Shown here: positions 11,249-60,788 of the stretch, in pieces
Position numbering within the stretch: the first letter of the stretch is position 1
Layout of the letters: each line of letters begins with the position of its first letter
Sequence record: PQ390715.1
Length of the DNA: 64,000 nucleotides
Direction: 5' to 3' (one strand)
Program-made: the position numbers and the translations under genes
Notes under the pieces: generated by a model
Databases searched by the model: none
What the model was told of the DNA's origin: nothing
Seen by the model: the letters and a program-made list of their open reading frames with translations, nothing else

Positions 11249-12025
11249 TTAAAATCCTACACTACCAAAAACACGATCAATGATATCTAAACCTTGATTG
11301 ACATTTTCAGGTAAAAGTGAATTAATTCTGGTACTATACATTTCTTCAATATTATCAAATTGTATACAATTATCTGGTTTGATAGTCACTACCATTTCAA
11401 CTGGAGAACTTGAGCTATAATCTAATGAATCGTATGATATGTTTTGAATAACACATCCGGTTAAAACAAAGTATTCCATAACACCAGCACTGTTATATGA
11501 AGAACCACCAATAAATTGATCTACTGCATTTACTAAGCCAGAATTATTTGTTGCAGCAGTTGCAGCATCTACTAGAGTATCTCTTCCTAGATTTCCTAGT
11601 GTATCATCTGAGTTACGTCCACTCAACATCTGTATAACCAAACCAAATTTATAAGAACCATAATCTTGGTCACTTCTTGAAGTTATTCTGCGTTGAAAGT
11701 CAAGTTGTTTTTGTAATTGGCGTGATAATGCTTTTGCTGATGCATTACCAACTGAATCACGGATAGATATTGTAATTGGTTCCCAATCATGACTACCTAT
11801 ATAGGAAGTATTAGTAGTAAATTGATATAGTTTATGAGTACTAAATGTTACAGTAGGTCTATCAATTTTATCAACATCTAATGCGATGTGATCACGTTCA
11901 TCTATATCAGTACCGAAATTATACACAATAACACGAAACTTGTATTTTGCTTTCGGTTGTAGCATTGAACGATTACGCCCCGATGGTAAAGGAACGCCAT
12001 ATTTATTAATCATGTTATTTGCCAT
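11249..12025 (-). CDS. tail tube protein paralogue 2 (gp19-like)
   Basis: QPKAKYKFRV, W..IT..IRD motifs; clearly paralogous to 12121-12807. Confidence 0.75.
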   Translation of the reverse strand: MANNMINKYGVPLPSGRNRSMLQPKAKYKFRVIVYNFGTDIDERDHIALDVDKIDRPTVTFSTHKLYQFTTNTSYIGSHDWEPITISIRDSVGNASAKALSRQLQKQLDFQRRITSRSDQDYGSYKFGLVIQMLSGRNSDDTLGNLGRDTLVDAATAATNNSGLVNAVDQFIGGSSYNSAGVMEYFVLTGCVIQNISYDSLDYSSSSPVEMVVTIKPDNCIQFDNIEEMYSTRINSLLPENVNQGLDIIDRVFGSVGF

Positions 12026-12071
12026 AGCAACCTCTTTTTTATTTTATAAGGCATTATACTTTATTTAGCAT

Positions 12072-12099
12072 AAAAAAAGCCCCGAATAGATTCGAGGCT
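12072..12099 (-). terminator. Rho-independent terminator
   Basis: AGCCTCGAA/TTCGGGGCT stem plus T7 on minus. Confidence 0.85.
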
Positions 12100-12120
12100 A
12101 TATATTAAGTTTAAATAAAA

Positions 12121-12807
12121 TTAATTTTCGTAGAAGTTACTATCTGGTAGAGTAGTACTACTAATATTAGTTTGTGCACCAGAAATAGAGGTAGCAGTTG
12201 ATGGATTACCGAAGCCACTAACTTCATCACCGAACGCTTCGCCATTTGGACCCAATTTAGCACAACCATCTGGTTGAACAGTCATTGAAATAACTTGTGC
12301 TTCACTTGAGGAATAATCCCAATCACCAAAGTTACTGGATTCAATAAAGCAACCTTGACATACCCAAGTACTCAATGTTCCTTCAAACAAGTTTGTTGTA
12401 TTTTCACTATTAGAACCATCAAGCTCTTGAATCCACATTTCAAATTTAAATTGTGAATCTGTCATGCGAGATTCTTGACTGTAGTAGTTAAATTCTTTAC
12501 GCATTTGGTTGTATAGTGCTTTAGCAGAAGCATTACCTACAGAGTCACGGAAAGCAACATCAATTGTATCCCAAGTGTATTTCCCTTTGTAGTGTGCAGA
12601 ACTGTTGTAACTATGAACAGTGACGTTTTCATGTGATACAGATACTGCCCCAACTGTATTGGTGTCTAGTGTAATCATATTACCATCATCATTAGTACCA
12701 AAACCAAAGAAAATAACACGAAATTTGTATTTTGCTTTTGGTTGTTTCATAGAGATACGACCACCGCCAGCGAGCGGTACGCCATATCGATCAAGCATTG
12801 TAGCCAT
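12121..12807 (-). CDS. gp19: tail tube protein (gp19-like)
   Basis: Downstream of the sheath gene; QPKAKYKFRV, GKYTW, GCF......GDWDYSSS motifs. Confidence 0.8.
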   Translation of the reverse strand: MATMLDRYGVPLAGGGRISMKQPKAKYKFRVIFFGFGTNDDGNMITLDTNTVGAVSVSHENVTVHSYNSSAHYKGKYTWDTIDVAFRDSVGNASAKALYNQMRKEFNYYSQESRMTDSQFKFEMWIQELDGSNSENTTNLFEGTLSTWVCQGCFIESSNFGDWDYSSSEAQVISMTVQPDGCAKLGPNGEAFGDEVSGFGNPSTATSISGAQTNISSTTLPDSNFYEN

Positions 12808-12842
12808 TTATATTCTCCTATTATGGAATGACATCTTTATAT

Positions 12843-12850
12843 TATTTATC
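12843..12850 (-). promoter_or_regulatory. T4-type late promoter (TAAATA core)
   Basis: GATAAATA about 36 nt upstream of the tube gene; same core precedes other structural genes. Confidence 0.6.
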
Positions 12851-12867
12851 TATCTGGAAGTATATTT

Positions 12868-13123
12868 TTAATTAACTAAAGTGTCATCAACAGGGAACCA
12901 ATTAATATTAACACAATATAAGTATCTTTTTCGTTTAGTGTGGTCAATATAGTTTACTGATATAGACCATTTTCCATTTGTGTATACTTCGTATTTTTCA
13001 ATTATACCGACAATCTTCCAAATTTTTTAAAAATATATTTAGTATGTGTACTGATTCCAACTGAGTTAAAACTATTTTACTGACATCTTGTATTGTTTTT
13101 TTTAGTATTTCTTCCATATCCAT
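12868..13123 (-). pseudogene. small gene broken by a one-base excess (41-aa ORF, or 84 aa if corrected)
   Basis: AAAGGA RBS and ATG at 13123; span is 256 nt (85 codons plus 1); +1 frame is open after the A6 run at 13023-13028. Confidence 0.45.
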
Positions 13124-20029: not shown

Positions 20030-20462
20030 TTATTTCCTTCTATTTCTTTGAAAAGCTTTAACAGCTTTAATAATACTGTTACACATTCGTTCAGTCAAAT
20101 ACTTTTGACATTCTCGTACATCAATGTACATGAACTTATCCAATTCTGGATGACTCTTACCATATCTATTAGTGTAAGTACTTTTACAAACTAATTCATC
20201 TGGTATTGGTTTGTCTTTGGCAGTATAAAAGAAAAGTACTAACCTTTTTCCCTTTCTATAGGATACATCACCAAGAAACAGAAGATCATCTTCATCGATT
20301 TCGTATCCTGTCTCTTCGAAACATTCACGTACAGCAGCTTCTTTGAAAGTTTCATTACCCTCAGCTTTCCCTTTAGGTAAATCCCAATGATTCTGTCCGT
20401 GTTGTATGTCCGATAAGTATCTGACCATCACGATAAAATATTATACCACAACTATAACGCAT
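20030..20462 (-). CDS. Nudix hydrolase; true start at 20462 is out of frame by one extra base at about 20399
   Basis: Nudix box GKAEGNETFKEAAVRECFEETG; upstream frame reads MRYSCGIIFYRDGQILIGHTT and joins GQNHWDLPKG if one C is skipped. Confidence 0.85.
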
Positions 20463-20503
20463 ATCTTATCTCTTTGTCATCAATCGATGTTCAGATACTA
20501 ATA

Positions 20504-20532
20504 ATTATATCAGTTATTGGTTTTTTGTCCCA
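20504..20532 (-). promoter_or_regulatory. GGGACA-class promoter
   Basis: TGGGACA, N16 spacer ending TGA, TATAAT. Confidence 0.65.
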
Positions 20533-20539
20533 CTATTTT

Positions 20540-21652
20540 TTAGAACATTTGTTTGATTGCTTCGTAACGAAGTTCACAAACAAAATCACGAATTTCTGAC
20601 GTTTCAAGTTCACCATCTTTGACCATTTGCTGAATATCAGGCAATTCAACATCAGTATAACGATCATAAACTTTAATAATTAGATCTTCAAGTTCTAAAT
20701 CAATTTCTTTTCGCAAAATGAAGTATTCCAAAACTTTATAAAGGAATTCTTCACCTCCGTTATTTTTAATATTCATATCCAATAAAATATTACCCATTTC
20801 AATAGGGGTCTTTTTACGGAATGTTTTGATATCATCACGGAAACGTTTGATATAATTACTAAATTTAACATACTTAACTGGAACTTTAATAGCACCGTTA
20901 AGTACTGAATCATTATTTACTTCTTCATTTTCAAGAAGAATAGACCACAGAAAATATGGTTTATATACATCTGTACAGTTCTCTGCAATATAATCAATAA
21001 GGTCTAAATTCTTTTTGGTCAAAGATGTATTAAACACCTTTTCGTAATAACCAAATTTACTTAGCGTCTTAAGGAACTTTGCAGGCTTTTCTTCGGAAAA
21101 TGCTTTTTCGAATTCCACAAACACACGGTCAGGAACAAGATGATTTAGCTCACCACTATTGACCATTCCAATAGCGAGTTCCTCAGTGCTTTCATGGATA
21201 GTAAAGTCAGAATAACGAGTAGCAAATCGAGCAAGACGTAACACACGTAATGGATCTTCTTTAAAATGGTCAGACACATGACGTAGTACCTTGTTCTTGA
21301 TATCAGCTTTACCACCGTATGGGTCAATGTGAATTTGTAGTACTGGATCATACGAAATTGCATTTATTGTTAGGTCACGGCGATACAAATCTTGTTCGAG
21401 TGTTACGCCTTTTGTATCCACTTCAAAGCCACCATATCCAGTACCAGTTTTACGCTCAGTACGGGCTAATGCGTGTTCATTACCTTCTGGACTTAGATAT
21501 ACAGGGAAATCCTTACCTACTTGCTTATAGCCAATACTTTGCAAGTACTTAATATCAGATTCAGTTGCTCCGACAATGACATAATCTTTGTCTTTTGCAC
21601 GAAGACCCATTAAACGGTCACGGACGTAGCCACCAACCAAATACTTTTTCAT
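20540..21652 (-). CDS. cca: tRNA nucleotidyltransferase (CCA-adding enzyme, class II)
   Basis: YLVGGYVRD.L...KDKDY, VGKDFPV, ARTERK, RRDLTINA, EDPLRVLRLARF. Confidence 0.95.
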   Translation of the reverse strand: MKKYLVGGYVRDRLMGLRAKDKDYVIVGATESDIKYLQSIGYKQVGKDFPVYLSPEGNEHALARTERKTGTGYGGFEVDTKGVTLEQDLYRRDLTINAISYDPVLQIHIDPYGGKADIKNKVLRHVSDHFKEDPLRVLRLARFATRYSDFTIHESTEELAIGMVNSGELNHLVPDRVFVEFEKAFSEEKPAKFLKTLSKFGYYEKVFNTSLTKKNLDLIDYIAENCTDVYKPYFLWSILLENEEVNNDSVLNGAIKVPVKYVKFSNYIKRFRDDIKTFRKKTPIEMGNILLDMNIKNNGGEEFLYKVLEYFILRKEIDLELEDLIIKVYDRYTDVELPDIQQMVKDGELETSEIRDFVCELRYEAIKQMF

Positions 21653-37780: not shown

Positions 37781-39013
37781 TTACTTATACCATTGCATTT
37801 CTCTAATATCAATGATAATTTTTGATGCTAACTTGATGTTTGGTTTTTTAGGAAGTACTGATTTCTTATATAGAACATCACGAATGTATTGTACTTTATC
37901 ATCGAAATATTCTAATACTTCTTCATACTTCCATTTACCATTACGAATATCCATCAACATTTGTGCATCTGGTCGTTTAACTTGAATAATTCCACTTTGT
38001 AATGCTTCTTCTGCACTATTCAAAAGTCGGATTGTGTGCATAGCATGTTTACAATCGTATCCGTGTTGTGATTCTAAAATAGCACGTTTGGCATTACGAT
38101 TTTCTTTCCATTTATGATAACTTTTCCTATTCTCACTATTTTCCTGATATTCTTTTTCGTTAAATTTGACAATTAGTTCTGGTTTGGTTTTCAACTCTTC
38201 AGTACTACGTTCTTTTGAAAAATAACGCAATGAACCATCATGGTTAATAGTGCTTTCATTAGGATTCTTAACAATCGCAAAAATGTTTTCTCCGTAATGA
38301 ATTAGTTCATAACCATTATTAAAATTCAATAAATTGAAATCACGATCTAGAATTTTGTCAGTAGTGTAGTTATGCACTAATTTTACAAAATGATATTGCT
38401 TTAATGGATTTTTCGAAACTAACTGCAATGACGTATCACGCATATATTTTTCAAAATCAATCTTTTTAGCATTAAATGGATGTAAGTTCGATGTATCTAA
38501 ACGTTCAACAAGATATTGTGGAAATGAATCATACATCCACGCAAGAACCTCATCGACTGGGTGTTCTTCTAAAATCTCATTTAAACGTTTTTCAGCAATA
38601 CGCTCTTTATCCATCCAACCGTGGTGATTTGTCATACGCTTAATCTGATTATATGCATATCCAGTATATGAAAATGCAATCTTAGAACTAAGAAGTTTTT
38701 GGTTAAATGAACGAAGATAGTCATAAATCTCAGTACTTTCTACAATGTGTTCTGGTTCGACCCATAGTGATTCCAATATATTAGGGTTGGCTTCAGTGTA
38801 TAATTTTAAATACTGATTTAACTCATAGAATTTAGTATCTTCTTCATTTTTATCAGCTACTTCTTTGACCTTATAGAATGGCGTAAGAATAAATTCTTTA
38901 TTAGCAAGAAAAATACCACGATAATCAGTATCACTTTCAGGTGTACTGGTTCCGTAGGCTTGTGACCCAGCCAAGTGTTTCACTATTGTTTGTTCAACAT
39001 ATTGGTTATTCAT
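37781..39013 (-). CDS. Pol-beta-superfamily nucleotidyltransferase (RlaP-like)
   Basis: GSQAYGTSTPESDTDYRG, NPNILE.LW, GYA..Q, YDCKHAMHTIRLL, IRNGKW. Confidence 0.8.
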   Translation of the reverse strand: MNNQYVEQTIVKHLAGSQAYGTSTPESDTDYRGIFLANKEFILTPFYKVKEVADKNEEDTKFYELNQYLKLYTEANPNILESLWVEPEHIVESTEIYDYLRSFNQKLLSSKIAFSYTGYAYNQIKRMTNHHGWMDKERIAEKRLNEILEEHPVDEVLAWMYDSFPQYLVERLDTSNLHPFNAKKIDFEKYMRDTSLQLVSKNPLKQYHFVKLVHNYTTDKILDRDFNLLNFNNGYELIHYGENIFAIVKNPNESTINHDGSLRYFSKERSTEELKTKPELIVKFNEKEYQENSENRKSYHKWKENRNAKRAILESQHGYDCKHAMHTIRLLNSAEEALQSGIIQVKRPDAQMLMDIRNGKWKYEEVLEYFDDKVQYIRDVLYKKSVLPKKPNIKLASKIIIDIREMQWYK

Positions 39014-55471: not shown

Positions 55472-56911
55472 TTACATATTTTCTTCAGCAAATTCAGCTA
55501 GTGGTGAGCGAACAACACCTTCAAGTTCGATGACACGACAACCTGCCCAATCTTTAAACTTCTCAGTTACATATGTCAAACCACTGTTAACAGGACTAAT
55601 AAACTTACTGTCAATCTGACTCAAGTTACCCATAATTACTACTTTACAGTTTAATCCTGCTCGTGTCAAGATTGTTTTGGCTTGTGCAGGTGTAATGTTT
55701 TGGAATTCATCAACTACTAGAATAGTGTTGGTGAATGAACGTCCACGTACAAAGTTTAGTGCTTTAAATTGAATAACATTACGTTTCATAATCTCTTCAA
55801 TACTACCTTGTGGGTTAGCATCATCTTTATGAAGAAACTCTAACGCGTCAATTGCGGCTCCACAGAATGGAATAACTTTTTCTGCTTCTGAACCTGGCAA
55901 GAAACCAATATCTTCAAACTGTGAGTCTTGAGTTTTAGAGAAGATGATTCGGTCGTATTTACGTTTTTCCAGTACTAATTCTAATGCAGTAGCAATCGTA
56001 ATTAGTGTTTTACCAGTACCAGCAGAACCTAGCAGTACTGTTAGATGTACATCAGGATCGAGAATACTGTTGATGGCGAGTGCTTGTTGGATATTCTTTG
56101 CTTTAATATCCCATACTTTAGCACGTAAAGCTACTGATTGTCCAATATCTTGGAATACCAAAATATCTTCTGGTGTTAGTGTTCCATCATCTTCCTCAAT
56201 TGCTGATTGACCTTCGTACACAAATAATACGTCTGCATCATCATATAGATAATCACCGATGCATAGATTTTGTGGAAGCAAATGTTCAATCAAGCTTTTA
56301 GAAATGTAATGATACAAACGACGACCAACTTGTTCGGATTGAATATTAGTATTGGATAAGTTGCTATATACTTCCCAAAAATTAATTTCCAAATGGTGTT
56401 GACCAATGTGAATCAAATCACTATCACCAATAACAATATCATGGCGATAATCTTGTACCTCGACACCATAACTTAGTGCTTTGATACGCATGTTGATATC
56501 ACGAGTTACCAGTACTGATTCTGTTGCTAAAGCTACCAGAATGATTTTATCATCAGGTACTGTGCTTTTGAGAAGGGTTTGAACTTTCTCTTCTGAACCT
56601 TTAGTACGAATTAGTGCCTCAGCTTCTTCGTTTGTAATAACAAACAATTTGCTATCAGGATTCATATTGGTATGAACATCAGCAATATTAACACCAGTAC
56701 TACTAATCTCATCATGTGATGCATCTGCAATAATTGCTTCAATGTTACGAATAGCAACACGAGCATCGCGTGAAACATCTACATTACGACTCTTAATTGA
56801 ATCCAATTCTTCCAGTACTGTAAATGGTAGAATGATTGCAGCACCATCAAAAGCAATAGATGCATTAGGGTCAGATAGTAGTACGTTTGTGTCAATTGTA
56901 TATTTTTTCAT
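55472..56911 (-). CDS. phoH: PhoH-family PIN plus ATPase protein
   Basis: PIN IDTNVLL, VLEELD, LVTRDINMRIKA; GSAGTGKT; VRGRSF; DEFQN; GNLSQID. Confidence 0.92.
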   Translation of the reverse strand: MKKYTIDTNVLLSDPNASIAFDGAAIILPFTVLEELDSIKSRNVDVSRDARVAIRNIEAIIADASHDEISSTGVNIADVHTNMNPDSKLFVITNEEAEALIRTKGSEEKVQTLLKSTVPDDKIILVALATESVLVTRDINMRIKALSYGVEVQDYRHDIVIGDSDLIHIGQHHLEINFWEVYSNLSNTNIQSEQVGRRLYHYISKSLIEHLLPQNLCIGDYLYDDADVLFVYEGQSAIEEDDGTLTPEDILVFQDIGQSVALRAKVWDIKAKNIQQALAINSILDPDVHLTVLLGSAGTGKTLITIATALELVLEKRKYDRIIFSKTQDSQFEDIGFLPGSEAEKVIPFCGAAIDALEFLHKDDANPQGSIEEIMKRNVIQFKALNFVRGRSFTNTILVVDEFQNITPAQAKTILTRAGLNCKVVIMGNLSQIDSKFISPVNSGLTYVTEKFKDWAGCRVIELEGVVRSPLAEFAEENM

Positions 56912-56971: not shown

Positions 56972-57274
56972 TTACATATTTGGTTCGTATTCAACATAGC
57001 AACGTGAACCTCGAACCTTTTCTTCCCAGCACTCCTGGTAAACAAGTTGACCAATTGAAACTGGTTCTCTTGATAGTCCATTACGTACTTCACCATTTTG
57101 GGTTTTATACATAAATGAACATTTGGACTCGCTACATTGTCCTAAACTAACAACTTCTGCGGTATTGTAGTGAATGTTGGTACGCTTAGTGTTCTCGTGA
57201 TACTGTCCGAACCAAAGAACTCCTGCACCTAACAGAACAGTACAAATAAGACTTTTGATGTGTGTTTGAATCAT
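56972..57274 (-). CDS. small membrane-anchored protein
   Basis: N-terminal TM; four Cys in the soluble part. Confidence 0.7.
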   Translation of the reverse strand: MIQTHIKSLICTVLLGAGVLWFGQYHENTKRTNIHYNTAEVVSLGQCSESKCSFMYKTQNGEVRNGLSREPVSIGQLVYQECWEEKVRGSRCYVEYEPNM

Positions 57275-57591
57275 AATGAGTTAAATCCATTGTTTAAGTA
57301 TGTTTCAATATTAATTTTACCAACAGGATTACTACTGTGAACAAAGTACTCAAACGGTTCTTTAATATTATTATCAAACATATAATCAATAAGAAACTTA
57401 GCAAAAGAATATCCAGTCTTTTCGTCTTCGCTCACATCACCCAAGTCATGGTCGAATGATACAAATGCTGGAATTCCATTTTCAATAACATATTCACATG
57501 CACTTTTAAAGTCACGACATACCACCATATCTTGGTTTGGATAATATAGATTTGCATCACGAATATCATCCAAAAACATTGAGTAAGACAT
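57271..57591 (-). CDS. cyclic-phosphate-processing receiver (cREC)-like domain protein
   Basis: FLDDIR, SFDHDLG, TGY..AK.L, HSSNPVG motifs. Confidence 0.75.
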   Translation of the reverse strand: MSYSMFLDDIRDANLYYPNQDMVVCRDFKSACEYVIENGIPAFVSFDHDLGDVSEDEKTGYSFAKFLIDYMFDNNIKEPFEYFVHSSNPVGKINIETYLNNGFNSL

Positions 57592-57600
57592 GTTAAACTC

Positions 57601-58152
57601 CTATAGATAACTAATTAGTAAGTTTTCTTTTTGAACCAGATACTCCAATTCTTGTTTTGCTGTACCGATGAAGTTCTGTGTCATAAGATTATTATATCCC
57701 GCTTCTCGATTTTGTCCCTTAGAATAACGAGAAATATGACATAAATTTACACCAGCAACTTCTGCACTTGCATGTTTAGCATTAGTGTATCCATCTCTAA
57801 TGTGTTTCAACTCGTCATAGCTCACTTCATAGCTAAAACTATGACTGTTTGCACCTGGGTAAATTTCAAAAGTTTTGAGTGGTCGAAGATGGGAAACAAA
57901 AATATTGTAATCCATTTCTTCTTGAACTTCACGACGCAACGCATCTTCTAGTGAGATATCAGTACTTTCTACGGTTCCACCACATCCACCAAGAAGACCA
58001 TCCCATCGTAATTGCAGTAATACTAAATTTACTTCTGGTATATCATTCAACTCATAGTTTTTGTAAGGGTTGCATTTTCTTGCAAAGAAATAACAAAATA
58101 CAAAATTTGCACGTGTGCCATATTCACCAAAGGGAACTTCTTTAACACTCAT
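57601..58152 (-). CDS. NUDT16-like Nudix hydrolase
   Basis: LLQLRWDGLLGGCGGTVE..DISLEDALRREVQEE; AKHASAEVAG; NFIGTAKQEL. Confidence 0.7.
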   Translation of the reverse strand: MSVKEVPFGEYGTRANFVFCYFFARKCNPYKNYELNDIPEVNLVLLQLRWDGLLGGCGGTVESTDISLEDALRREVQEEMDYNIFVSHLRPLKTFEIYPGANSHSFSYEVSYDELKHIRDGYTNAKHASAEVAGVNLCHISRYSKGQNREAGYNNLMTQNFIGTAKQELEYLVQKENLLISYL

Positions 58153-58907
58153 TTCATACGTTCCTTAATTATAGTCTCTAGATGCGGTATTGCTTTGGTT
58201 GCTGGCTTGATAACTTTTTCATTAAACAAAAAATCATTATCATTTTTACGAATGTTAACATTAACACTATAACATGGTAATGCTGCTGCTAATCTCGACC
58301 ATACCAGTACTGTATCGCTACTACCAATTACAATAACTGTATCATTTTCATTAAGAGATTTCAACACATTATTTCGTTCTTCGTAAATTGGTAAGCGAAT
58401 ACCATCAACATAACGATGATATTCTCCAATCATTACTACATTTGGTTTAGCAAAAACATCATGTTTTGGTATGTATGGTTCGTATCCGCAGTTAATAACA
58501 TTATAATCATCGGAATTGATACTATAATTTTCAATAACTTCGCACAAGTTTCCATGAAGTTTAAGCTCATGACCACCAATACGAGTATAAAGATCGTCCA
58601 TGTTAGAAGTCATATGAAGGAAGCAATCACCATATTGATCTTCTAACGATTTTATAAAATAATGCATTGCATTGGGTTCGCATTGTCCCAATTTTACACG
58701 TAATGTATTATAGAAAGAATGAACAACGTGATATTTCGTAGTTAAACTAGCAATGTTACATACATCATTAATTTTAAATGTATCCCACAAACCATCATCA
58801 AATCGAAAAGGTTCCATACCACTTTCAACAGAAAGTCCTGCACCTGATATAATCAGTAATCGCTTTTTACCTTCATTGCTTATAAATTTTTCTGATATCA
58901 TATTCAA
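58149..58907 (-). CDS. Sir2/CobB-family NAD-dependent deacylase
   Basis: SGAGLSVESG..FR, TSNMDDL, LHGNL, PNVVMIGE, VIGSS. Confidence 0.88.
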   Translation of the reverse strand: MNMISEKFISNEGKKRLLIISGAGLSVESGMEPFRFDDGLWDTFKINDVCNIASLTTKYHVVHSFYNTLRVKLGQCEPNAMHYFIKSLEDQYGDCFLHMTSNMDDLYTRIGGHELKLHGNLCEVIENYSINSDDYNVINCGYEPYIPKHDVFAKPNVVMIGEYHRYVDGIRLPIYEERNNVLKSLNENDTVIVIGSSDTVLVWSRLAAALPCYSVNVNIRKNDNDFLFNEKVIKPATKAIPHLETIIKERMK

Positions 58908-59131: not shown

Positions 59132-59725
59132 TTAATACTTTAAAACATCAAACTCGGCACTTACACTAGTTACATTATCACTGACAATTTTAAAAATTGA
59201 TTTGATGCGTTCATGTAGTGGCACTTTTGATTCATTTTCAACTTCAATATATGCTTGCATTGCTGCAATAGCATGATATGTTCCGCTACCTACGGCTGTG
59301 ATTCGTGTTTTTGGTTGAAGAACTGAAAAATCTTCTTGAACTTCATAAATTGTATGATTGTGAAGAATGATGAACTGTCCACCACCTACTTCTTGTGAAG
59401 GATCACGAGAACCCCATTCCTCTTTGAACATTTGACGAATGATTGGAATAACTTTAAGAACCAAATATTGTGAAAATGTTTGACCAGCAGCTTGTTCAGG
59501 TAAATTAAGGTTATAATTTAACAACTGACCCATACGAAATGATGTAGTATAACCCAATGCTATTACTTCTTTAGTTCTAGTTAGTCCATCATCATGTAAC
59601 TTGATAAATTCTTTCTCGAATACCTTTGGCTCAGTTTGAACAGTTTTTGTAAATCCATTGCTTCCTAACTTATCCCCAGCAATAAAAGAACTTACTCCGT
59701 CAGTGTGTGCAATAATACAGGTCAT
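59132..59725 (-). CDS. HslV/proteasome-beta-like Ntn hydrolase
   Basis: Start MTCIIA (Thr2 nucleophile) after GGAG; AGD, AVGSG...A..AM. Confidence 0.65.
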   Translation of the reverse strand: MTCIIAHTDGVSSFIAGDKLGSNGFTKTVQTEPKVFEKEFIKLHDDGLTRTKEVIALGYTTSFRMGQLLNYNLNLPEQAAGQTFSQYLVLKVIPIIRQMFKEEWGSRDPSQEVGGGQFIILHNHTIYEVQEDFSVLQPKTRITAVGSGTYHAIAAMQAYIEVENESKVPLHERIKSIFKIVSDNVTSVSAEFDVLKY

Positions 59726-59982
59726 AAAATAGCTCCAATTGCAAATAATGTTGTGTATAAGATATAAATTAGTGCTCCTAACAACATTAGGCACACCAAG
59801 TATGAAGTTGATAGTACATAATAAATTATTGCTTCGAATTTTGAATTGAACTTCATTGTAGTTGGATCAATAAAGCCATTACGATAATCTTTGTAAATGA
59901 AAACTGTTAGAAAAATAACTGTAGCATACATTACTACAGTAGCATAAAAAATAATAGATGTCAAGTTTTGGATGTTTGTCAT
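59722..59982 (-). CDS. small two-TM membrane protein
   Basis: Two hydrophobic segments. Confidence 0.7.
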   Translation of the reverse strand: MTNIQNLTSIIFYATVVMYATVIFLTVFIYKDYRNGFIDPTTMKFNSKFEAIIYYVLSTSYLVCLMLLGALIYILYTTLFAIGAIL

Positions 59983-60052
59983 AGTTATATAATCTCAATA
60001 TAATTAATAACAAAGGAAGTACATCATAATCATCCTGTTATTTTAATTATTT

Positions 60053-60661
60053 TTATTGTTTGACTGAACCGTAAAAAACCAGTTCTGGTTTTGTTAATAT
60101 TACAACATCTTCACCACGAGAACGACTAACTCTAAATAGAACTTCTGGTGGGATTCCATTTGCTGCATATAGTGAAAAAAGGAAACCTACCTTTGTTGCC
60201 ATTTCTTCGGTAAAAGTTGATAGCTGTCTTACAGACACAAATGAATTATCACCATCACTAACATTACTTTTAATCGAAATGTTATGAAGACCCAGTACTG
60301 AGCGATTTGTCATATATCGCTTTTCGGGAGATACACTAAAGAATACCACAGTACATGCTGAATTGCAATACCTAGAAACAATTAAATTTATCCCATTGTC
60401 TCTAACAAAGTTTGCCATTCGAATACCTGCATCAAAATCACCACCAGGAGATGTAATTGTGATGGTATCATAGTGTTCTTTATCATACAACTCTATCATA
60501 CGCTTGAGTGACCCATCTGTAATATCTGATATGAAATATACATTTCGGGTTTCAGGATTATACTTTATCACATTTTTACTTTCAATACCAGCACTGGCTG
60601 GAAAATTTATTAACAATAGAAACATCGCTGCTTGTATCACTTCAAGCCATAGTCTTTTCAT
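60053..60661 (-). CDS. exported ClpP/crotonase-fold peptidase-like protein
   Basis: Signal peptide; ITSPGGD, CNSAC, LGLH. Confidence 0.65.
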   Translation of the reverse strand: MKRLWLEVIQAAMFLLLINFPASAGIESKNVIKYNPETRNVYFISDITDGSLKRMIELYDKEHYDTITITSPGGDFDAGIRMANFVRDNGINLIVSRYCNSACTVVFFSVSPEKRYMTNRSVLGLHNISIKSNVSDGDNSFVSVRQLSTFTEEMATKVGFLFSLYAANGIPPEVLFRVSRSRGEDVVILTKPELVFYGSVKQ

Positions 60662-60788
60662 ATAACAAGTCCTCAATTTTGTTTAGGAAGATATAAATAA
60701 TATAGTACTTAAACACTTAAGTCAAACTTTTTCTGTACTTAACTCAAATTTTTAAAAATAAAACTTAAGGTGTACAGTTTATAACAGA

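Follow-up and report, generated by a model that had tools for sequence, protein, structure and literature searches.

A Sir2, NUDT16-like Nudix and cREC gene cassette of Rak2-like jumbo phages as a candidate for NAD+-dependent RNA-end processing

Layout and conservation of the cassette

Among the Rak2-like phages, Escherichia phage SHEFM2K (PQ390715.1) is a jumbo myovirus that falls in the PBECO4/121Q (Asteriusvirus) group and has a genome of 348 kb. The stretch of DNA analyzed here (the window; 64,000 nucleotides, 100% identical to SHEFM2K, with window base 1 at record base 284007) encodes a Sir2-family protein, a Nudix hydrolase and a small protein with a cREC domain, and these three genes are the subject of this work (Table 1). 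Every gene around the trio is carried on the minus strand, none in the region is broken, and the three open reading frames fill positions 57271-58907 exactly, in keeping with an original prediction, made from the sequence alone, of three tightly packed genes. Read directly, the junctions are an ATGA common to the Sir2 stop and the Nudix start, a gap of 9 nt with an intervening GGAG between the Nudix stop and the cREC ATG, and a second ATGA common to the cREC stop and the start of a gene for a 100-aa membrane protein. The trio had been called an operon of cREC, Nudix and Sir2; all three are there, but the unit is transcribed Sir2 first, followed by the Nudix and cREC genes, and it extends downstream into two further genes, for the membrane protein and a PIN-PhoH protein. 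The predicted span also holds apart from its last six bases, as Sir2 translation most likely begins at ATG 58901 and not six bases upstream at TTG 58907: an AGGA ribosome-binding site precedes the ATG, and the orthologues start at the corresponding position.

No terminator-like site was found on the minus strand from 59918 to 55111, and the 39 sites given by a promoter scan were not in excess of chance, as shuffled sequence gave 32.2 +/- 6.4. Copies of the T4 late-promoter core TATAAATA are few: the window has 3, against 11.1 +/- 3.4 expected from dinucleotide-preserving shuffles, all 100 of which held at least 3.

To compare neighborhoods, we used annotated phage records together with nine contigs. 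Six annotated relatives were fetched, namely RaK2, Serratia phage BF, GAP32, Salmonella phage Munch, Erwinia phage Hallingskeid and Yersinia phage fHe-Yen9-04, and these span Alcyoneusvirus, Eneladusvirus (two phages), Mimasvirus, and the phages Munch and Hallingskeid. The five-gene order is colinear in all six, so the genes are co-conserved, a point on which the original prediction had staked itself. Identities to these relatives are 43-63% for Sir2, 46-56% for the Nudix and 61-66% for cREC. In the window phage, two other Asteriusvirus-type phages and RaK2, the Sir2 gene overlaps the Nudix start; in the remaining relatives the two genes abut. The metagenomic contig L010 keeps the order of Sir2, Nudix, cREC and PIN-PhoH and carries one additional gene, of 103 aa, that separates Sir2 from Nudix. 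The cassette is a shared inheritance of the Rak2-like jumbo phages, with a colinear gene order in every genus of them that was sampled.

Among three Asteriusvirus-type phages (the window phage, ph0011 and WPEC5), all five genes are intact and of equal length, and dN/dS values of 0.03-0.22 across the five indicate strong purifying selection (0.08-0.22 for the Nudix, 0.10-0.14 for the membrane protein). The Nudix is found in 75 of 50,697 phage records, about 71 of which are Rak2-like, while cREC is found in 135 and Sir2 in 975.

The 100-aa protein has an N-terminal hydrophobic segment, four Cys in its C-terminal part and no recognized domain; each of the six annotated relatives has it, at 40-50% identity, in the position separating cREC from PIN-PhoH, and in the metagenomic contigs L010 and L012 PIN-PhoH directly follows cREC with no gene called in between. 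PIN-PhoH combines an N-terminal PIN endoRNase with a PhoH ATPase/RNA-helicase domain, matches the NCBIfam model 'RNA 5'-3' helicase PhoH2' at 2e-44, which is under that model's cutoff, and is the most conserved gene of the cassette, at 68-80% identity in all relatives. For RaK2, mass spectrometry of virions reportedly had PhoH among its hits (PMC5259590).

Table 1. Genes of the cassette in transcription order, in window coordinates
Gene product	Position	Strand	Length and basis of assignment
Sir2-family protein	58149..58901	-	250 aa from ATG 58901; mechanical ORF start TTG 58907
NUDT16/X29-clade Nudix hydrolase	57601..58152	-	183 aa; Pfam Nudt16-like 1.3e-18
cREC (cyclic-phosphate-processing receiver-like) domain protein	57271..57591	-	106 aa; Pfam cREC_REC 1.5e-22
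Small membrane protein	56972..57274	-	100 aa; PHROG 14661 'membrane protein' 1.2e-44
PIN-PhoH (PhoH2-type)	55472..56911	-	479 aa; Pfam PIN_4 7e-20, PhoH 7e-44

The three core proteins

The Sir2, Nudix and cREC domains named in the original prediction are each recovered by Pfam, and so is its more specific claim that the Nudix is NUDT16-like rather than MutT-like. The Nudt16-like model PF22327 scores 67.9 bits (cutoff 27), and the generic NUDIX model is weaker (7e-7, 29.7 bits). With HMMER against all PDB sequences, the Nudix retrieves Xenopus X29 (2.8e-12), human NUDT16 (about 1e-11) and TIRR/syndesmos (about 5e-7), and the first Nudix outside NUDT16/X29/TIRR appears at 0.05. The three peptides on which the prediction had relied do lie in the Nudix reading frame, and the HMMER alignment pairs them with three elements of NUDT16/X29, namely the Nudix box, a Glu-containing motif downstream of it and the C-terminal F-I-G motif. 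Structure prediction places the protein in the same group: with an AlphaFold model based on 12 relatives (pLDDT 93.3) as query, every one of the best 39 Foldseek matches among PDB entries is a NUDT16, X29 or TIRR structure (E 1e-14 to 8e-11, TM 0.7-0.8), and the next is a CoA pyrophosphatase (1e-7, TM 0.56). Structural searching was where the original prediction could have foundered on a generic MutT or ADPRase placement, and an affinity for NUDT16 is what it found. On this sequence and model evidence, we firmly assign the window Nudix to the NUDT16/X29 clade and not to the MutT or ADPRase types.

TIRR is the catalytically inactive paralogue in the clade. The R-E-x2-E-E motif of the Nudix box and the extra downstream Glu are intact in the window protein. 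R74, E75, E78 and E79 are invariant among close relatives, and R49, G55, G58, G59, E75, E78, E79, E131 and G134 are invariant in a diverse 35-sequence alignment. E131 is the extra Glu, presumably an additional metal-binding residue as in X29. Because the Nudix-box residues and E131 are invariant across the 35 diverse homologues, the phage Nudix looks enzymatically active. X29 is a U8 snoRNA-decapping Nudix, and NUDT16 and X29 also hydrolyze ADP-ribose, IDP and non-canonical caps. NUDT16 has been shown to cleave target-attached ADP-ribose (PMC8883491), and our literature search found no biochemical data on any phage member of the clade.

The Nudt16-like family is large, with 480 clusters (50% identity) at E <= 1e-3 in a profile search of 1.84 billion representatives. 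The gene contexts we looked at are both phage-like and cellular, and its fusion partners are cREC, Ham1 ITPase, an HD domain and ankyrin repeats. A recent transfer of the phage gene from animals was considered and rejected, given an identity of about 25% and membership in this large environmental family. One cellular metagenomic contig (locus L020, 5001-6176) encodes a Ham1 (ITPase) and Nudt16-like fusion that sits among adenylosuccinate synthetase and SAICAR synthase genes; this setting among purine genes suggests a role in clearing inosine nucleotides for some prokaryotic members of the family.

The Sir2 protein matches Pfam SIR2 (PF02146, 3.7e-20) and PHROG 2162 (2e-77), and its best PDB match is CobB (3e-22). 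Its NAD+ pocket is CobB-like, with the catalytic His and the G-E loop conserved: GxGLS, N102/D104/D105, H118-G119 (the catalytic His) and GSSD are invariant in eight Rak2-like orthologues. The zinc module is a different matter, as the alignment of these eight orthologues has no conserved Cys in the stretch corresponding to the zinc-binding tetrad, and the two Cys that the window protein has there are not shared. The best scores against the NCBIfam CobB models (NF040867 and relatives) are 85-93 bits, far short of the cutoffs of 243-320. A defence-type Sir2 NADase was rejected on the grounds that the protein matches none of the PADLOC defence-system models (ThsA, DSR and Sir2-HerA types) at E <= 0.01. 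Phage sirtuins of this kind have been described as a distinct clade (Iyer et al. 2022, PMC9503650). The RaK2 orthologue (locus L002, 4264-5001) has G-N-G instead of G-A-G and lacks the NAD+-loop Phe-Arg and six adjacent residues, with the catalytic His kept; judged by these residues, Sir2 may be losing activity in that genus.

The cREC protein scores 80.5 bits against Pfam cREC_REC (PF20274, 1.5e-22, cutoff 27). D8, D9, R11, F46-D47-H48-D49-L50, G60, S86, N88 and G91 are invariant across 43 homologues, and H85, just before S86, is nearly so. Its AlphaFold model (pLDDT 96.7) has four strands and four helices and gives only weak receiver-domain matches in Foldseek (E about 1e-3, TM 0.5-0.6); a PDB sequence search returned no relative. 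In the loci looked at, the neighbors of cREC genes were never kinases, as a histidine-kinase type of context would have. In BF, GAP32, Yen9-04 and cluster P0014, Nudix and cREC form one polypeptide with cREC at the C-terminus. The domain was defined in a 2021 jumbo-phage paper from the laboratory of Iyer et al. 2022, whose authors call the family uncharacterized and give cyclic-phosphate activity as a prediction (PMC9503650). The model and conserved residues of the window protein agree with the picture given there of a divergent, probably enzymatic, receiver-like domain.

Proposed RNA-end processing and competing interpretations

As a computational prediction, the gene cluster is not new. Iyer, Burroughs, Anantharaman and Aravind (Viruses 2022, PMC9503650) described the neighborhood by comparative genomics from the locus of Serratia phage BF, whose Sir2 (AQW88637.1) is the exemplar in their section 3.7.3, and predicted a sirtuin-centered, NAD+-using RNA repair system that parallels KptA. 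The window cassette is orthologous to the BF locus and is the Asteriusvirus version of this cluster.

Support for RNA-end processing comes from an unrelated lineage, because Vequintavirus rV5 carries an overlapping operon of Rnl1 (PF09511), cREC (4.5e-15) and SIR2. Beside this operon lie genes for a kinase-only PNK-like protein and a calcineurin-like phosphoesterase. In rV5_ev156 the 'PNK' (locus L021, 3196-3606, minus strand) is 136 aa long, kinase only and without a phosphatase domain, and 3'-end healing is therefore left to other genes of the cluster. The rV5 cluster amounts to an RNA end-healing and sealing kit, to which cREC and Sir2 could contribute healing of the 3' end. Elsewhere, an RNA ligase gene lies about 2 kb from one cREC gene, and a metallophosphoesterase gene directly adjoins another.

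RNA-repair genes also occur at a distance from the cassette in SHEFM2K and in a relative. The SHEFM2K Rnl1 gene (record 11793-12920, minus strand) lies outside the window on the strand of the cassette, which is about 17 kb away when counted through the record origin; its product is 59% identical to the Rnl1 of phage CBB, a relative in which Rnl1 and Pnkp lie about 20 kb upstream of its own cassette. Inside the window, tblastn with rV5 and L015 proteins found no relatives of RNA ligase, PNK or metallophosphoesterase, and ARAGORN found no tRNA gene in the 64 kb. The window does encode RlaP (PF10127, 'RNA repair pathway DNA polymerase beta family', 3e-16; 37781-39013, minus strand, 410 aa), annotated only as 'nucleotidyltransferase' and about 18 kb from the cassette, and a CCA-adding tRNA nucleotidyltransferase (PolyA_pol, 3e-18; 20030-21652, minus strand), whose gene is directly beside those for a generic 132-aa Nudix (NUDIX 1.2e-12), the second Nudix of the window, and a thioredoxin-like protein.

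Given the domain identities, intact catalytic motifs, coupling, synteny, Nudix-cREC fusion, purifying selection and independent linkage of Sir2, cREC and ligase observed here, we suggest, with a probability of roughly 40%, that the trio is the core of a five-gene, translationally coupled cassette for NAD+-using RNA-end processing, or RNA repair. We infer every chemical step and in vivo substrate of the model that follows. Cleavage of tRNA or mRNA by host RNases released in infection would produce ends with a 2',3'-cyclic phosphate. The cREC protein, with its invariant acidic/His/Ser site, would open cyclic phosphates on the RNA end or on an ADP-ribose by-product. The zinc-less sirtuin would place ADP-ribose from NAD+ on the remaining 2'-phosphate, as Tpt1/KptA does, yielding nicotinamide and ADP-ribose 1'',2''-cyclic phosphate. 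The NUDT16-type Nudix would then split the pyrophosphate of the ADP-ribose derivative into AMP and a phosphoribosyl product, provided that the clade tolerates 1''-substituted ADP-ribose; such a role would fit, because NUDT16 cuts ADP-ribose that is attached to a target. Finally, PIN-PhoH2 may unwind and trim the RNA, and the distant phage RNA ligase 1 may seal its ends.

Several points weigh against this model. No sirtuin has been shown to be an RNA 2'-phosphotransferase and no cREC has been tested biochemically (PMC9503650). The ligase is outside the cassette, 17 kb off. To our knowledge, the T4-type route through Pnkp and Rnl1 that these phages possess does not leave a 2'-phosphate, and there would then be no need to remove one; likewise, the PIN nucleases we know of are metal-dependent and make no cyclic phosphates. 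The divergent contig L012 keeps Nudix, cREC and PIN-PhoH with no detectable Sir2 (the 248-aa protein upstream of its Nudix gene was rejected as a hidden Sir2, at an hhalign probability of 0.3%). The trio as such, in isolated phages, is confined to one viral lineage, and its synteny could be inheritance alone; synteny by itself is therefore limited as proof. A 2H phosphodiesterase gene linked to the cassette in relatives, described below, is not found by tblastn in the 64-kb window, and the relatives' 2H protein as query matches Escherichia phages in at most 2 of 157 matched records.

The most specific form of the model, in which the zinc-less sirtuin is an RNA 2'-phosphotransferase that replaces Tpt1/KptA non-homologously, cREC is a new cyclic phosphodiesterase and the Nudix disposes of the by-product, would amount to an alternative NAD+-dependent RNA healing pathway in jumbo and rV5-like phages, and we hold it to be doubtful. 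The phosphotransferase route for the sirtuin is itself published as a prediction.

The original prediction proposed a different function, namely counter-defence against NAD-derived immunity. In such a scheme the Nudix, with cREC, would destroy ADP-ribose signals or strip toxin-placed ADP-ribose from DNA, RNA or protein, leaving a phosphoribosyl stub, and Sir2 would modify or compete with a host component. The neighborhood of the relatives speaks for it. Most Rak2-like genera have, immediately upstream of Sir2 and thus of the whole cassette, a gene for a 148-aa 2H phosphodiesterase of the Acb1 family; the GAP32 copy (locus L006, 4500-4946), annotated 'RNA ligase', matches Pfam Acb1 (PF23474) at 5.7e-16 and has orthologues in five other loci (L003, L007, L008, L009 and L010), and none was seen in the fetched RaK2 locus. 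Acb1 is an anti-CBASS phosphodiesterase family. Upstream of the 2H gene in relatives are NadM and NadV, a NAD+ salvage pair of the NARP2 type (NadV plus NMNAT salvage) described in PMC13464706. Relatives of both the Acb1-like and the NadM-NadV genes have experimentally shown counter-defence roles. The Nudix, for its part, belongs to a clade that cleaves target-linked ADP-ribose (PMC8883491), and Iyer et al. argue that phage Nudix, Macro and NADAR domains chiefly oppose soluble ADP-ribose signals. NARP3 and RyR-domain signal-degrading proteins were also considered and are unrelated to the cassette.

Much of this context is missing from the window phage's own lineage, which keeps the cassette under strong purifying selection. 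The window phage is without an Acb1-like gene, NadM and NadV are not at the window locus, and no Asteriusvirus is among the best 60 of 1076 NadV matches, a database ranking and not a whole-genome scan; the same kind of database search did find the Asteriusvirus Rnl1. The adjacency to counter-defence genes is seen within a single viral lineage. Moreover, macro, ARH and NADAR domains are not present, nor is any domain that takes ADP-ribose off cleanly, the predicted targets of cREC are cyclic phosphates and not the glycosidic rings of Thoeris-type signals, and a sirtuin that spends NAD+ is a poor fit with defending the NAD+ pool. In our literature search, no test of any of these proteins came up, nor any paper connecting 'Nudt16-like' with phages. 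Counter-defence of this kind is therefore somewhat unlikely in our judgment: the Acb1-like and NadM-NadV neighbors of the relatives stand in its favor, but neither is detected in the window phage's lineage, and no observation demonstrates that ADP-ribosylation is reversed or that Thoeris-type signals are degraded. The context points more to NAD+-dependent RNA-end processing than to the mechanism first proposed, which was nonetheless right in spirit, because RNA repair is itself counter-defence in a broad sense.

In the window, the place of the relatives' NadM-NadV and Acb1 genes upstream of Sir2 is occupied by genes for an HslV-like peptidase (PHROG 1040, no Pfam match) and a ClpP/NfeD-like protease (59132-60676, minus strand). 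The HslV-like gene is probably an old neighbor of the cassette, because Salmonella phage Munch has one between NadV and the 2H gene.

Sirtuin-product disposal is a still less probable alternative. Here Sir2 would remodel proteins of the host or the phage, as a true protein deacylase or ADP-ribosyltransferase, the Nudix and cREC would clear O-acyl-ADP-ribose and ADP-ribose, and the salvage genes that adjoin the cassette in relatives, NadM and NadV, would recycle nicotinamide. The closest solved relatives of Sir2 are indeed CobB deacylases and its NCBIfam matches are all CobB-type, with the NAD+ pocket, catalytic His and G-E loop conserved; the protein is unlike the defence NADase sirtuins in PADLOC, and the invariant Ser, His and Asp of cREC would presumably also suit an esterase. 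However, the zinc module needed by canonical deacylases is not found in the phage protein, the CobB models all score it well under their cutoffs, and Iyer et al. place phage sirtuins in a distinct clade. Product disposal would also leave unexplained the PIN-PhoH2 in the cassette and the rV5 operon of Rnl1, cREC and Sir2 with its kinase and phosphoesterase.

Least probable of all is that the Nudix removes NAD- or ADP-ribose-type caps, with PIN-PhoH2 degrading the exposed RNA, or hydrolyzes IDP/ITP-type nucleotides, with Sir2 and cREC as neighbors without a common pathway, for although NUDT16 and X29 are decapping enzymes with structures that hold FAD, ADP-ribose or IMP (PDB entry titles), T4 NudE.1 decaps NAD-RNA in vitro (bioRxiv 10.1101/2024.04.04.588121), the L012 lineage does without a detectable Sir2, the Ham1 fusion lies among purine genes, and dCMP deaminase and anaerobic ribonucleotide reductase genes lie near the cassette in the window, the Nudix-cREC fusion argues for a joint substrate with a cyclic or terminal phosphate rather than a cap or free nucleotide, Sir2 overlaps or abuts the Nudix start in the window and its relatives, and the phage has its second, generic Nudix elsewhere.

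Significance and comparison with known systems

Our finding re-identifies a neighborhood already described by comparative genomics. What we add, and did not find in papers, is the firm NUDT16-clade assignment of the Nudix, the sirtuin's missing zinc module and the Acb1 identity of the relatives' neighboring 2H gene; we also add the NARP2 company of that gene, and the observation that the Asteriusvirus lineage retains the cassette without an Acb1-like gene and with no Rak2-type NadV detected. If the predicted chemistry is true, it would be a new activity for sirtuins, a first function for the widespread cREC domain and a use of the NUDT16 fold by bacterial viruses, and it would reveal the means by which large phages that infect E. 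coli, Klebsiella, Salmonella and plant pathogens respond to host defences that cut RNA.

At the level of single proteins, the phage Nudix shares with animal NUDT16 and Xenopus X29 the Pfam family PF22327, the fold (TM about 0.8), and aligned Nudix-box glutamates, extra downstream Glu and C-terminal F-I-G motif. It differs in being only 24-27% identical to them and in its setting, a cassette with a sirtuin, cREC and PIN-PhoH and, in relatives, a fusion to cREC. The sirtuin resembles E. coli CobB, a class III sirtuin and protein deacylase, in its NAD+-binding motifs and catalytic His, but lacks conserved zinc-binding cysteines and falls well under the CobB family cutoffs; in addition, the Arg of the CobB Y-x-x-R stretch, which recognizes succinyl groups, aligns with a Leu in the phage protein.

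At the level of gene neighborhoods, the cassette matches the type-1 arrangement of Iyer et al., exemplified by BF, in that sirtuin, Nudix, cREC and PIN endoRNase are contiguous on one strand. It departs from that arrangement in that Nudix and cREC are separate genes in SHEFM2K and fused in BF, the published 2H gene is not found in the SHEFM2K lineage, and NadM/NadV are not at the locus. The rV5 operon, their type 2, has the same tight linkage of Sir2 and cREC in a phage lineage unrelated to the Rak2-like phages, and its Sir2 is 39% identical to the window protein over 191 aligned residues; it has no Nudix and no PIN-PhoH, and its partners are instead Rnl1, a PNK-like kinase and a phosphoesterase. 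The third parallel is the route formed by Tpt1/KptA, a 2H cyclic phosphodiesterase and a Macro protein (Poa1), which removes the 2'-phosphate during tRNA ligation. None of the trio is homologous to Tpt1, 2H or Macro, and the likeness lies in predicted function only: as we propose, NAD+ would be spent in removing a 2'-phosphate, and an ADP-ribose cyclic-phosphate by-product would then be processed (PMC8883491, PMC9503650).

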